Shown: piece after piece, positions 11,699-57,340 of the stretch | How the letters are laid out: each line of letters starts with the position of its first letter | Numbering within the stretch: position 1 is the first letter of the stretch | Source of the DNA: Octopus sinensis | Lineage: Eukaryota | Length of the DNA stretch: 64,000 bases | Direction: 5' to 3' | NCBI RefSeq assembly: GCF_006345805.1 | Contig: NC_043005.1 | Coordinates: 12,214,001 to 12,278,000, forward strand | Notes under the pieces: generated by a model | The model's database searches: none | Told to the model about the DNA's origin: nothing | The model's input: the letters and a program-made list of their open reading frames with translations, nothing else | Program-made: the position numbers and the translations under genes

Positions 11699-11792
11699 TG
11701 ACCAGCTACGGCGGTACGTATTCTAAAATTGGAACGATACAGAGAAGATTAACAAGGATGACACGGAAATTCGTGAAGCGTTCCATATTTTT
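11699..11792 (+). ncRNA. RNU6: U6 snRNA-derived copy (pseudogene) with a ~13-nt internal deletion
   Basis: ctaaaattggaacgatacagagaagatta...caaggatgacacggaaattcgtgaagcgttccatattttt matches U6, with the ACAGAGA box intact. GCATGGCCCCTGC of the ISL region is absent. Confidence 0.92.
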
Positions 11793-11795
11793 ATG

Positions 11796-11847
11796 GAGGC
11801 GGTGCTCCAGCATGACCGCAGTCAAAGGACTGAAACAAGTAAAAGAG
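11796..11847 (+). mobile_element. 3' tail of SINE family A fused behind the U6 copy
   Basis: aggcggtgctccagcatgaccgcagtcaaaggactgaaacaagtaaaagag matches the family A 3' end. Confidence 0.88.
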
Positions 11848-11861
11848 AAAAACCAACAGGA

Positions 11862-12040
11862 TTGATTGATTGATTGATTCTAGTTTCAGCTCACAAGCTG
11901 TGGCCATGCTGGGGCAGCGCCATTTGGTGTTGCTACATGGTTTTACTTCACGAATGCTTTTTAGCAACTGCCATTTGGTGCATGAGAGAGTTCGATGCAG
12001 CTGTCCTCATCTGCACCTCCTGCAACATGAATATTATTTT
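11862..12040 (-). mobile_element. 3' end of a CR1/L2-type LINE with (AATC)n tail
   Basis: Minus strand encodes MRTAASNSLMHQ (compare RAEVLNSHVHQ at 37.4 kb), then a 3' UTR ccagcatggccacagcttgtgagctgaaac and an (AATC)n tail. Confidence 0.65.
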
Positions 12041-12842
12041 CAATTCTTAATCGGAAGATCTACTTCCAGGCCATAGTATGTCTACTCTTGCTCTTGTTCG
12101 GAGTTCACGCTTCAGTTGCCCGAAGCCTCGTTCAATATCTTGTGAGGAATCTGTAACTGTGGATATAAGCAATTTGTTACGTAGGAGGCATTCTCCCATG
12201 CTTTTGCATCAGAAAGTTGGCGGGCAACATTAATAACTGGTTCTTTATTTTGATGTTTGAATCTCGTTAGTCCTGTATCACCCTCCTATCCAGAAATGTA
12301 TTGTTTTCGGTGTCAAATTTATTGTGTACTGTACACTGGTTGTCTCGGTGATCTCTAGTATTGCAGTCTCTAGTATCTGAATATGCTACATTCCGTTCCA
12401 ATGCCATAAAGCTAAAATTTATAGCTAGAACAGCCAATGACTTCGCAGCACACGTTGTATTATTGCTCTTCAGATGAGTTATTAAATTTTGCTTGAATCT
12501 GTCAGAATATGCATTCTTCATTCTCATTTGAACGGCTTTCGCATACAGAAAGTTAATCACATCTATGCTCAATTGTTTCCATGTTGTCGACAATTCCGTT
12601 ACCTTCCAGCGTTCTAATGAACCAGTCAATGATGGTAGTGGAAGTGGTATTGACGGGGACGGAGACGGTGACGGAGGAAGTAGTGGTGGTGGTGGTGGTG
12701 ATGGTGGCGGTGATGGTGCTATTGCTGGAGGTTATGGTGGTGGTGGTGGTGGTGGTGGTAGTAGTGGTAGTAGTAGTAGTATAGTAGTAGTAGTAGTAGT
12801 AGTAGTAGTAGTAGTAGTAGTAGTAGACGGTAGTGGTGATTG

Positions 12843-13074
12843 CGGCAATCTGGCAGAAGCGTTAGCACGCCCGGCGAAATGCTTAGTGGTATTTCGTCTA
12901 CAGTTACGTTCTGAGTTCAAATTCCGCCGAGGTCGACTTTGCCTTTCATCCTTTCGTGGTCGATTAAATAAGTACCAGTTACGCACTGGGGTCGATGTAA
13001 TCGACTTAGTCCGTTTGTCTGTCCTTGTTTGTCCTCTCTGTGTTTAGCCACTTGTGGGTAGTAAAGAAATAGGT
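12843..13074 (+). mobile_element. SINE family B
   Basis: Matches the other B copies. Confidence 0.85.
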
Positions 13075-13486
13075 AGTGTTGATTGCGGTGATGATGATGA
13101 TAATAGCGTTGGTGATAATGATGATAATGATGAGGGGATGGGGTGGTAACGGTGGTAGTGATGGAGATGATAATAATGATGATGATGATGATGATGATCA
13201 TGACGACGACGACTCATACTTTACCTGTAGTTTCTTTCATCTACGGAGGCGGGAGAAAAGAAACGGAAGTCGACGAGGTTTGACTTGAGAATGGTAAAAC
13301 TTCAAGCATCAGAACAAATGCTACAGTACAAGATTCCGATAATGGTTGCCCTCATAACAAAAACAACAGCAGCAGCAACAACATTAACAATAACAACAAC
13401 AGCAATAATATATGATGATGATGATGATGAGGAGGAGGAGGAGGAGGAGGAGGATGTTGAGGGTAATGACAATCCTTTCTAGTATA

Positions 13487-13690
13487 GGCATAAGGCCTAA
13501 AGTCAGTGAAGGTAGGGGGCTAGTCGATTAAATCGAACCCAGTGTGTCTCTGGTACTTAATTTAAAGAACCCAAAAGGATGAAAGCAAAGTCGACTCCGG
13601 CAGAATTTGAACACAGAACGTAAAAACGGACGAAATACCGCTAAGCAATTCGCCCCGCCTACTAACGATTGTGACAGCTCGCCGCCTTAA
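13487..13690 (-). mobile_element. SINE family B (short-tail variant)
   Basis: Reverse complement of the aaggcggcgagctg head through the ggccttatgcct tail. Confidence 0.75.
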
Positions 13691-13871
13691 TGACAATAAT
13701 AATAATAATTATAATAATAATAATAATAATAATAATAATAATAATAATAATGATGATAACGATGATGATGATTTCAAATTTTTGCCACAAGGGTAGCTTG
13801 GGTGAGAGGATTTCGCTCGGCGTGCTAACGATTCTGCCAGCTTGCCGCCTTAATAATAATAATAATGATAA

Positions 13872-54720: not shown

Positions 54721-55533
54721 CGATCTCATATCAAGATAATCAGCGCATGACCTTGCAGGTGGGGCCCGGTTAGAATTTTCTTCTGGTTGAGTAACCCATC
54801 CCGCTCATTGGTCCCTGAATAAGGATTGTTTAAGGATATTGAACGAACCACCCATGTTTCCAAAGGTCAGTTATCCAAATCTCAAATAATTCATTTCAAC
54901 ACACGGCTGTGATGGCCCCCCCCCCACTACTTCTGCTCGTTGTCAGATATGCACATATCGTCAGCTACTATGCACATATCGTCAGCTACTAAGGGACATG
55001 GTCAACTGGTTGAGGTCAAACAACTGACAAGCAAATCTATGGTATTGAGCAGATTATTGCCTTTGTACACTTTCTAACGCTGGAGATGTACTACGGTGTC
55101 AGCTGTTCACTACCAGTGAACTAAAGTAACACCTCTTACTTTTCGAGCACCTTCCGGTGTATTCGAGCGTTTCCAAGCAGTGCTGTTTTCTGCTAGTGTT
55201 CCATCCTTATTTCAGCCCCTATTTATTCCATATACTTCTCAAGAATTTTACTCATTATTTCCAGGACTCCGATAATAATTGGTACTACTGCTACCTTTTT
55301 ATTGACCACAACTGCTTAACTTCCCAAGCTAACCTGTCATGTCTGTCGACTTTTCTTCGTTCATTATCTGATACTCTGTTGTCTACCGGGCATGCTGTGT
55401 CTATGATCCAGCATAGTTTGTTTTCTTTCTCAATTAAGACTAGGCCTGGCTTCCTATTCTCAATCGCATAGTCGCACTGAATCCTGAAATCCCATAGGAA
55501 ATTTGCATTTCTATTTCATGTTTGTGGTCGTAC
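54721..55533 (-). mobile_element. Composite of an R4/Dong family-2 end and element D (longer copy)
   Basis: FLWDFRIQCD..IENRKPGLV...CWIIDTAC; same junction as the 52.5-kb copy. Confidence 0.8.
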
Positions 55534-55542
55534 ATTATTATT

Positions 55543-55758
55543 AAGGCGGTGAGCTGGCAGAGTCGTTAGCACGCTGGACGAAATTCCTAGCGGTATTTCG
55601 TCCCTCACTACATTCTGAGTTCACATTCCGCCAGGGTCGACTTTGCTTTTCATCCCTTTGAGGTCGATAATATAAGTGCCAGTAGAACTCTGGCGTCGAT
55701 GTATTCGATTCAACCCCTTACCCCCAAAATGCCTGCCCTTGTGACAAAATTTAAAACG
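55543..55758 (+). mobile_element. SINE family B (short-tail variant) with (ATT)n tail
   Basis: aaggcggtgagctggcagagtcg... Confidence 0.78.
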
Positions 55759-55776
55759 ATTATTATTATTATTATT

Positions 55777-56795
55777 CAGTAGTTTTATTTTTATAGCGTG
55801 CTTTCACTTCACTACCGAGCGCAGCTCTGTGTGCCTTGGGTATGTGCTGTGATTTGTTGTGATGCTCTGATGGTTATTGTATGGAAAGTGTTCTGCGTAG
55901 GATGTGTGCAGTGCCTAGTAGTGCAATTTTCTGTGTGTTATATGTGTTTGTAAGTCCTGGTGTTTTTGTTATGTATTTGTCTGAATATTTTTTATCATGC
56001 CTAATGCACCTACTATGATAGGAATTGTTTCTGTTTTCAGATTCCACATTCTAGTTACCTCTATTTCCAGGTCTTTGTATTTTGAGAGTTTCTCCATTTC
56101 TTTTAGAGACACGTTGTCATCAGCCGGTATTGATACATCAATTAGAAAGCATTTTTTTTCTTCATGATCTCTGACAACTATATCTGGTCTGTTGGCCTTA
56201 ATTTCTCTATCTGTGTGTATCGGCATATCCCAGAGTATGGTTGCTTTCTCGTTTTCTGTGACCTTTTCTGGTGTGTGCCTATACCATCTTTTTTCTGTTG
56301 TTATTCCATAATGTTGGCATAGCTTCCAATGTATGTAGGTTCCAACTCTGTCATGTCTGTGAATATATTCCTTCTTAGCCAGGACTGGGCAGCTAGAGAT
56401 AATATGATTTATTGTTTCTTGTCCATCTCCACATATTCTGCAGTTACTTGTAATATTTCTTTTCATTACATGTTTTCGGTAATTTCTGGTGGGGAGGCTT
56501 TGGTCTTGTGCTGCAATTAAAAATCCCTCTGTTTCTGCTTTGAGTCCTGAGCTTCTCAACCATTGCTGGGATTTTTCTTTGTCTATTTCTTTTGCGTTTA
56601 GTTTAGTCCAGTATTTACCATGAAGGGGCTTTTCTTGCCATCGTTTTATCATGGTTCGTTGCTGTTCTATTTTTAGTTTGGATTTCATTTGTTTTATAGC
56701 TTTTGTTGTTTCTTCATCATCTTCTTCTTCTTCTTCTTCTTCCTGTTTATTAGGTGGTATGATTTCTTGTTTGTATTTGTCAGCTTCCTTAAAGT
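55777..56795 (-). mobile_element. R4/Dong-type non-LTR retrotransposon, 5'-truncated, one frameshift
   Basis: ORF 55969-56688 extends in frame upstream to FKEADKYKQ; CCHC + RLE motifs; (ATT)n on both flanks. Confidence 0.94.
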
Positions 56796-56854
56796 ATTAT
56801 TATTATTATTATTATTATTATTATTATTATTATTATTATTATTATTATTATTAT

Positions 56855-56926
56855 TCCCATGTGGTCTAGTGGTTAGGAATCCTGGCTTTCACCCAGGTGG
56901 CCCGGGTTCGATTCCCGGCATAGGAA
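56855..56926 (+). tRNA. trnE-TTC: tRNA-Glu(TTC) gene or young pseudogene
   Basis: TCCCATG..GGTCTAGTGGTTAGG..CCTGG CTTTCAC CCAGG..CCGGG TTCGATT CCCGG CATAGGA A. One acceptor-stem and one D-stem mismatch; no CCA and no T4 terminator. Confidence 0.85.
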
Positions 56927-56938
56927 CTTGTTCTTAAT

Positions 56939-57340
56939 AAGCGTAGGAGTGCCTGCGTGGTAAGTAGCTTGCTTACGAACCCCATGGTTCCGAGTTCAGT
57001 CCCGCTGCGTGGCACCTTGGGCAAATGTCTTCTACTATATCCTCGGGCCGACCAAAGCCTTGTGAGTGGATATTTGGTAGACGGAAATTGAAAGAAGCCC
57101 GTCGTATATATGTAAATATATATATGTATGTGTGTGTATGTTTGTGTGTCTGTGTTTGTCCCACCAGCATCGCTTGACAACCGATGCTGGTGTGTTTACA
57201 TCCCCGTAACCTAGCTATTCGCCAAAAGGGACCGATAGAATAATTACTACGCTTACAAAGAATAAGTCCTGGGGTCGATTTTCTCGACTAAAGGCGGTGA
57301 TCCAGCATGGCCGCATTCAAATGACTGAAACAAGTAAAAA
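56939..57340 (+). mobile_element. SINE family A, full length, directly behind tRNA-Glu
   Basis: Matches family A. Confidence 0.88.

Follow-up and report, generated by a model that had tools for sequence, protein, structure and literature searches.

Three small RNAs made by RNA polymerase III (Pol III), namely U6 small nuclear RNA (snRNA), 5S ribosomal RNA (rRNA) and a glutamate transfer RNA (tRNA-Glu), have left one copy each in a 64,000-nucleotide (nt) stretch of the Octopus sinensis assembly GCF_006345805.1 (contig NC_043005.1, positions 12,214,001 to 12,278,000 of the forward strand; hereafter the window), and each of these copies stands just upstream of, and in the same orientation as, a member of one family of short interspersed elements (SINEs) that we call SINE A. 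Judged from their sequence, the three loci are probably chimeric cDNAs that were each inserted as a single unit, the two parts having been joined by template switching or by prior RNA ligation during SINE A retrotransposition. The three units are made up as follows, in coordinates of the window.

11699–11792, plus strand: U6 snRNA retrocopy (Rfam RF00026, 64.3 bits, model positions 1–105).
11793–11796, plus strand: ATGG, a 4-nt linker separating the U6 T-run from the SINE tail.
11797–11851, plus strand: 5′-truncated SINE A tail (consensus 353–407, 55 nt, 94.5% identical).

16383–16391, plus strand: upstream copy of the 9-bp direct repeat ACACCAATG, ending exactly at the Rfam-defined start of 5S.
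16392–16510, plus strand: 5S rRNA retrocopy (Rfam RF00001, 71.2 bits, model positions 1–120).
16511–16521, plus strand: 11-nt linker TCACATATTTA, with a T-run at its end.
16522–16803, plus strand: SINE A head (consensus 1–178, 91% identical), continued by an expanded (TATG)n(TG)n at 16689–16799 and then TAGAAA.
16804–16812, plus strand: downstream copy of the 9-bp direct repeat ACACCAATG, directly after the SINE microsatellite and TAGAAA.

56795–56855, plus strand: perfect (TAT)20, the 5′ flank of the unit (100% matches, 20.3 copies); its last T is the first base of the tRNA.
56855–56926, plus strand: tRNA-Glu(TTC) copy (Rfam RF00005, 58.3 bits; ARAGORN Glu-ttc).
56927–56939, plus strand: 13-nt linker CTTGTTCTTAATA, in which AATA follows what reads as the 3′ trailer of a pre-tRNA, with TT at its end.
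56940–57339, plus strand: full-length SINE A (consensus 1/2–400, 91% identical), its tail cut at GTAAAA.
57340–57415, plus strand: perfect (ATT)25, the 3′ flank of the unit, in phase with the upstream array.

Pol III RNAs were sought across the whole 64-kb window with Rfam at its gathering score, and tRNA identity was taken from ARAGORN; exactly three matches were found, all on the plus strand and each spanning its model end to end (U6 1–105, 5S 1–120, tRNA 1–71). Because a permissive Rfam scan of the whole window (E ≤ 1) added only false microRNA hits driven by microsatellites, the U6, 5S and tRNA-Glu copies are the sole recognisable Pol III RNA copies in it. We mapped the junctions against a 407-nt SINE A consensus built from the window's own copies; a same-strand SINE A piece begins 4–13 nt past each of the three RNAs, all parts of the three units lie on the plus strand, and two of the three linkers (4, 11 and 13 nt) resemble Pol III trailers. 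Rfam, BLAST and consensus mapping agree on this arrangement, which had been proposed by an earlier, sequence-only reading of the stretch; the close adjacency that it described holds, with its gaps of about 3, 10 and about 12 nt becoming 4, 11 and 13 nt once measured on the consensus. Its placing of a SINE A head behind 5S is likewise right, with the correction that the 5S-linked copy consists of that head and a microsatellite only. The SINE portions of the three units are 91–94.5% identical to the consensus, as in ordinary copies, and the sequence upstream of all three units is unique.

The adjacency is real and does not arise by chance. With nine SINE A fragments placed at random positions on random strands, a same-strand SINE A start would fall within 15 nt of a given RNA with a probability of about 1.1 × 10−3, and of all three with a probability of about 1.4 × 10−9; none of 2,000,000 simulations produced three such adjacencies, bearing out the earlier judgement that coincidence was very unlikely. 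SINE B, a second family that is commoner in the window than SINE A (at least 25 fragments), abuts none of the three RNAs, and none of the six remaining SINE A copies lies beside a Pol III RNA in the E ≤ 1 scan of the window.

We next to these observations set the state of the RNA copies, which are retrocopies and not resident working genes: they are not native genes because the U6 core is deleted, the tRNA lies inside a microsatellite without a CCA end and with a mismatch, and base pairs of the 5S are broken. The U6 copy, a pseudogene, is full length from position 1 to its terminal T5 but has lost 13 nt of its conserved core; upstream of it there is no TATA-like element near −30, the sole TATA-like motif being TTAAATAT at −18 to −11, and a sensitive scan of the same upstream sequence found nothing tRNA-like. 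The 5S copy is full length too, with many transitions and broken helix pairs. A 5S RNA running on through TCACATATTT as helix I was considered and dropped, as Rfam fits a complete 120-nt model within 16392–16510. In the tRNA-Glu copy one C:A mismatch interrupts the acceptor stem, and the A and B boxes are intact by eye.

The sequences that flank the units bear most directly on how they arrived. At the 5S unit, the 9-bp repeat ACACCAATG encloses RNA and SINE together; its score was reached in 8 of 500 flank shuffles in which the match could lie anywhere, and it extends to 11 bp with one mismatch. At the tRNA-Glu locus, RNA plus SINE (56855–57339) are enclosed by one perfect (ATT)n microsatellite, of undefined length as a repeat, and no direct repeat brackets the SINE only. 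To the left of this unit lies the 5′ end of a minus-strand long interspersed element (LINE) from a family with (TAA)n ends that is located in such arrays, and the microsatellite therefore plausibly predates the insertion of the unit. We also considered the (ATT)n flanks as the tail of that (TAA)n-tailed LINE and rejected this: relative to the unit, the repeat is on the other strand, and there is no LINE to the right. At the U6 unit, no direct repeat was found either adjacent to it or past its neighbour, a LINE-like element on the minus strand that we call element X, in a search reaching up to 14.5 kb, and none brackets the SINE only. The U6 chimera stands tail to tail with element X, with AAAAACCAACAG and (GATT)5 between them (11852–11925), and this junction may conceal the target-site duplication of the U6 unit.

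Duplications around the joined RNA and SINE had been named as the feature to look for; the candidates are the 9-bp repeat at 5S and a single (ATT)n array, of undefined repeat length, at tRNA-Glu, with none found at U6; duplications around a SINE only, which would have spoken for its separate insertion, are missing at tRNA-Glu and U6, and the 5S-linked SINE has no canonical 3′ end. The sequence-only reading had left open whether Pol III RNAs were captured as chimeras or SINE A was inserted downstream of Pol III genes; the sequences that enclose RNA and SINE, and the deleted U6 pseudogene joined at its T-run to a truncated SINE tail, favour the first of these and speak against the second.

The junctions themselves are consistent with a join between RNA ends. 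Behind 5S and tRNA-Glu the SINE sequence opens with its canonical first bases (position 1 and position 1/2, respectively) and so is 5′-complete, which fits end-to-end jumping and not truncation; in the U6 unit the SINE is 5′-truncated and begins at consensus position 353. The sequences that follow 5S (TCACATATTT) and tRNA-Glu (CTTGTTCTT) end in T-runs and would correspond to the trailers of primary Pol III transcripts, and it is because these short trailers end in T that the two copies look like primary transcripts. The 5S linker could be either such a 3′ trailer, a 5′ extension or a U6-end fragment. What the captured RNAs share is abundance and a U-rich 3′ end, not promoter type; the earlier emphasis on capture across all three promoter types is accordingly better replaced by the simpler common factor, the 3′ oligo-U end of primary transcripts.

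We defined SINE A by BLAST with the copy at 56938–57340 and by MAFFT alignment. From 5′ to 3′ the element has a head beginning GGCGCAGGAGTGGCTGTGTGGTAAG, then an internal (TA)n(TG)n, then a 3′ unit and lastly a tail ending CCAGCATGGCCGCAGTCAAATGACTGAAACAAGTAAAAGAG(TAAAGAG)n. In all, the window holds nine copies or fragments, six on the plus strand and three on the minus strand, or about one per 7 kb, slightly denser than the one per 8 kb first estimated. The six that are not joined to an RNA are listed here, together with extra bases found in front of one of them.

4489–4897, plus strand: solitary full SINE A, 95% identical to the consensus.
18277–18696, plus strand: solitary full SINE A, older (83% identity).
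27838–27975, minus strand: internally deleted SINE A, in which a common GCTTAC joins the beginning of the head to the final ~95 nt.
36325–36712, minus strand: solitary SINE A without its first 5 nt; 14-bp TA-rich direct repeat.
41393–41805, plus strand: solitary full SINE A; a 6-bp direct repeat, AATATA, abuts both ends.
60818–61413, minus strand: SINE A with an internal insert of ~190 nt.
61414–61427, minus strand: 14 extra nt, ATTCCATATTTAGA, before the head of the preceding copy, including TTCCATATTT, which equals the 10-nt end of U6.

Dispersed on both strands and carrying a tail box common to two LINE-like 3′ ends, SINE A behaves as a tRNA-derived SINE; its head shows the motifs TGGCTGTGTGG and GGTTCCGGGTTCAGTCC by eye and is not called as a tRNA by ARAGORN or Rfam. 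The element itself looks composite: its head is tRNA-like, its internal (TA)n(TG)n resembles what was once a tail, and its 3′ unit bears a LINE tail. Ordinary copies lie in AT-rich sites and some carry short AT-rich direct repeats; because the repeats of solitary copies are so short and AT-rich, the absence of a direct repeat at a given copy is weak evidence. The 10-mer TTCCATATTT occurs three times in the window against 0.55 expected, and CATATTTA lies just upstream of two SINE A heads, in the 5S linker (16511–16521) and in the bases at 61414–61427. The extra bases before the head at 61413 could stem from a jump that was broken off and left a short U6-end fragment, or could be a 5′ extension passed on by a master copy.

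The tail of SINE A points to the kind of enzyme that might be involved. The tail box CCAGCATGGYCRCAG has nine matches in the window against 0.12 expected, seven of them in SINE A tails, one in element X and one in a further LINE-like element that we call LINE-Y. Folding gives the tail two hairpins (−17.8 kcal/mol, z = −3.3), of which element X retains the second with changes on both sides of the stem (CAGTC/GACTG versus CAGCT/AGCTG).

11861–12660, minus strand: element X, LINE-like; 3′ end with box CCAGCATGGCCACAG, hairpin and (ATCA)5 tail.
36927–37540, plus strand: LINE-Y, a LINE-like 3′ portion with box CCAGCATGGTCACAG, ending in (GATA)n; called as a LINE from reading of its translated sequence.

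This common box and hairpins suggest that SINE A depends on a LINE that must recognise the tail; neither LINE-Y nor element X has a match in Pfam that would place the partner LINE in a clade. The U6 and tRNA-Glu units end in a SINE A tail with box and hairpins; the 5S unit does not. For LINEs that recognise a tail (L2, RTE), template-switch chimeras have been reported as the only form in which they generate U6 pseudogenes, processed pseudogenes being otherwise rare in genomes with such LINEs (PMC4476161). That every Pol III RNA copy in the window is tied to a tail-bearing partner would follow if tail-dependent LINEs copy cellular RNAs only by template switching.

In the order of events that we infer, a LINE reverse transcriptase would start target-primed reverse transcription on SINE A RNA carrying the LINE-type 3′ tail, with its conserved box, two hairpins and short repeat, and would copy the SINE either to its very 5′ end, as for 5S and tRNA-Glu, or partway, as for U6, where the copied part would run from SINE position 353. 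The enzyme would then continue onto the 3′ end of a second RNA, presumably an oligo-U-ended primary Pol III transcript, and proceed up to its 5′ end, so that the fused cDNA would be integrated as one unit. The two RNAs might alternatively be ligated before reverse transcription, a route that would suit the U6 case best.

Several observations weigh against this account. The linkers of 4–13 nt are longer than a strictly direct join would leave, and three of nine SINE A copies being chimeric is far above the published rates for L1, which may reflect the choice of window or another process. The U6 unit has no direct repeat, as described above, and its 55-nt tail is by itself indistinguishable from the 3′ end of a partner LINE sharing that tail. 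At tRNA-Glu the (ATT)n flanks define no repeat length, and the perfect arrays of 61 and 76 bp could be assembly joins. Finally, the 5S unit poses a problem of priming: the 5S-linked SINE A is without the 3′ unit and without the LINE-type tail, the unit ending (TG)nTAGAAA, and a tail-dependent LINE should need the tail that is absent. If that tail was lost later, the 9-bp repeat could be fortuitous (p about 0.016).

One solution to the priming of the 5S unit may lie in the sequence TGTGTGTGTAGAA, which occurs in the window only at the end of that unit (16790–16802, plus strand) and at the 3′ end of an RTE-like LINE (52041–52053, plus strand).

51501–52013, plus strand: RTE-like LINE, remnant of its open reading frame (ORF).

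The 5S unit may have been primed on an RTE-type tail, with the reverse transcriptase switching into the (TG)n of the SINE to give a three-part unit; a head-only SINE family, or a later deletion, may instead account for the missing tail.

Among the alternatives to single-unit chimeric insertion, the one that survives best, which we nevertheless consider unlikely, is that the 5S- and tRNA-Glu-headed SINE A copies are members of amplified dimeric subfamilies, each founded by one fusion and driven by its own internal promoter. Both 5S and tRNA carry internal Pol III promoters, and no T4 terminator separates either RNA from its SINE, so that read-through into the SINE would be possible; the occurrence of CATATTTA upstream of two SINE A heads also hints at inherited 5′ extensions. 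Composite families of this kind have precedents in HaSE3, a fusion of 5S and a tRNA-derived SINE that grew into a family (PMC3272025), in 5S-headed DeuSINEs, as they are cited in PMC4824008, and in SINEU (PMC4494074); all place a small-RNA head ahead of an existing SINE body, as here, and our units look like the starting stock from which such families could grow. These are, however, amplified families with common junctions, whereas every fusion and junction in the window is seen once, and the 5S unit is without the tail needed for mobilisation. A 78-aa frame runs across the tRNA-Glu/SINE junction and has no protein match in a database where this genome seems to be hardly represented. The promoter of U6 genes is external, and the U6 fusion keeps only 55 nt of tail, so that no self-transcribed family could come of it. 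For the same reasons, the earlier description of the RNAs as new 5′ heads goes past the evidence, each fusion occurring once in the window and U6 having no internal promoter.

A second possibility, improbable in our estimation, is that SINE A lay just downstream of a real Pol III gene at each source locus and that a long read-through transcript was retrotransposed as one RNA. The product would look alike, one unit with a direct repeat, and the linkers resemble gene 3′ flanks with imperfect T-runs (TTT after 5S, TTCTT after tRNA-Glu). Such 5′ transduction would nonetheless call for three separate source loci with SINE A 4–13 nt behind three different genes, which merely moves the coincidence elsewhere; U6 has a full T5 terminator and a SINE part cut to 55 nt, and the placement of the SINE exactly at its canonical 5′ end behind 5S and tRNA-Glu suits a junction between RNA ends better.

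Targeted insertion has still less in its favour. Some retroelements target Pol III genes, among them Ty3, Dictyostelium TRE and Tx1-clade elements, and the SINE A machinery might likewise favour sites downstream of Pol III genes or T-rich terminators, the RNAs being residents or older pseudogenes; a T-run precedes all three junctions and ordinary SINE A copies lie in AT-rich sites. We regard this as very improbable. Repeats or microsatellite bracket RNA plus SINE at 5S and tRNA-Glu, no SINE-only repeat was found at tRNA-Glu or U6, and the RNAs do not have the character of resident genes: U6 is deleted and has no promoter at the right spacing, the tRNA is inside a microsatellite and 5S is degenerate. 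The SINE behind U6 is moreover cut on the junction side, as expected when reverse transcription breaks off and not of an element settling at a preferred target, and the other six SINE A copies are beside no Pol III RNA. Chance adjacency or an assembly artefact is scarcely credible: the window is repeat-rich (39% of its bases have a second copy within it) and contains a gap of 100 Ns, and the perfect microsatellite flanks could be assembly joins, but three same-strand adjacencies within 15 nt would arise with a probability of about 10−9, the junctions lie in unique sequence outside repeats, and the commoner SINE B never abuts the RNAs.

Chimeras of single-unit insertion have been described elsewhere, and the claim that nothing comparable was known holds only in part. 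Doucet et al. (2015) reported U6-L2 in platypus, together with U6-Mon-1, whose partner is a SINE, and, from other vertebrates, RTE/L2 chimeras (PMC4476161); for cephalopods no report was found in the literature searched. As in those chimeras, a full-length U6 here adjoins, without a change of orientation, the 3′ portion of a LINE or its SINE. The chimeras of Doucet et al. carry flanking target-site duplications, of which the U6 unit shows none, and our loci differ from them further in their invertebrate, apparently cephalopod, host, in having 5S and pre-tRNA as partners, in the placement of two of three junctions at the exact 5′ end of the SINE, and in their very high local density.

Human and mouse U6/L1 and other chimeric retrogenes (Buzdin 2002, 2003; Garcia-Perez 2007, as cited in PMC4494074 and PMC2104539) are similar in having a complete small RNA 5′ and a retroelement 3′, in the same orientation and directly or nearly directly joined, and the architecture of our U6 unit is the same; U6/L1 chimeras have flanking repeats, and their 3′ partner differs from the SINE with a structured tail and no poly(A) found here. 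RNA ligation by RtcB is a demonstrated alternative route to U6 chimeras (Moldovan 2019, PMC6789731). Human 5S/L1 and tRNA/L1 chimeras are mostly antisense, involve tRNA halves and have been ascribed to twin priming (10.1101/2025.02.02.635956), in contrast to the 5S and tRNA copies of the window, which are sense, full length and followed by trailers.

A parallel outside mammals is in Magnaporthe grisea, where Gogvadze et al. (2007) described chimeras of WEIRD, Mg-SINE and MGL, one of them tripartite, and documented double template jumps (PMC2104539); such double jumps bear on the possible three-part reading of the 5S unit. There, as here, a SINE is among the fused parts, and direct repeats flank the Magnaporthe chimeras. 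The fungal system involves one non-coding RNA of unknown nature and switching at sequence hot spots, unlike the three classical Pol III RNAs found here. Gogvadze et al. list five features (PMC2104539): a 5′ RNA of full length, a 3′ partner truncated at its 5′ end, break points at random, one orientation for both parts with a direct join, and repeats on either flank. The U6 unit fits the structural ones and shows no repeat; the 5S and tRNA-Glu units are flanked by the 9-bp repeat and by (ATT)n, respectively, and have a 5′-complete SINE.

The fusion process is a known one, and its probable occurrence here is notable for its local density, for its sense, full-length 5S and pre-tRNA partners, and for its host lineage. 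Locally, three of nine SINE A insertions and all three Pol III RNA copies are probably chimeric. A bolder proposal, which we advance only tentatively and would not ourselves bet on, is that this LINE/SINE system jumps end to end onto nascent Pol III transcripts with oligo-U ends, at a rate that exceeds that of mammalian L1 by orders of magnitude. Pol III-RNA pseudogenes in this genome would then arise mainly from this system, which would also supply SINEs with new heads; young composite families would have the tRNA-Glu- and 5S-SINE A units among their founders or members, and the U6-end fragment before a fourth SINE would mark aborted or multiple jumps.

Were the pattern to hold genome-wide, it would provide a natural record of the gain of a SINE head, a step usually only deduced from finished families, in the form of sense, full-length 5S and pre-tRNA copies placed precisely where an active SINE begins. 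The rule that tail-dependent LINEs copy cellular RNAs by template switching only would then apply to a protostome as well, and the pattern would point to oligo-U at the 3′ end of a primary Pol III transcript as what determines which RNA is captured. In practical terms, most U6, 5S and tRNA matches in such genomes would be retro-chimeras, to be left out of gene counts.

The window also holds other repeats. Four copies of a LINE with a zf-RVT ORF, ending ...CTACTG(AAT)n, include the one to the left of the tRNA-Glu unit:

21675–21994, plus strand: copy of the zf-RVT LINE.
24552–25588, plus strand: copy of the zf-RVT LINE.
50615–50789, minus strand: copy of the zf-RVT LINE, with the same trinucleotide array on both sides.
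55759–56704, minus strand: copy of the zf-RVT LINE.

The arrangement suggests a Dong-like element targeting (TAA)n. A protein search with its ORF gave only two close relatives, on contigs of ~1 kb. The family shows 92% identity to a Logan contig (SRR7158634) and 80% to one contig from GCA_024449705.1. RTE and Dong LINEs have been described in octopus (PMC9115989), with which the RTE-like and (TAA)n-tailed LINEs of the window are compatible. The ORF of the RTE-like element also matches ENA contigs of 41–50 kb, which hold no SINE A, SINE B, U6, 5S or tRNA-Glu match and, because they are devoid of these, belong to another organism; metagenome and viral contigs, scanned for the exact pattern of the SINE A head, gave no match. 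No credible host exon was found among the stop-free stretches of at least 70 aa in the window.

The other abundant family, SINE B, is tRNA-like with the core GTTCAAATTCCGCCGAGGTCGAC, and its fragments lie at 10030–10433, 46900–47430, 47920–48413 and elsewhere; several are head-to-tail tandems and there is one inverted pair. An assembly gap of 100 Ns occupies 2456–2555, and the GC content of the window is 35.6%. A remnant of a Tc1/mariner-type DDE transposase, with a weak match to Pfam DDE_3, lies at 35156–35371 on the minus strand.

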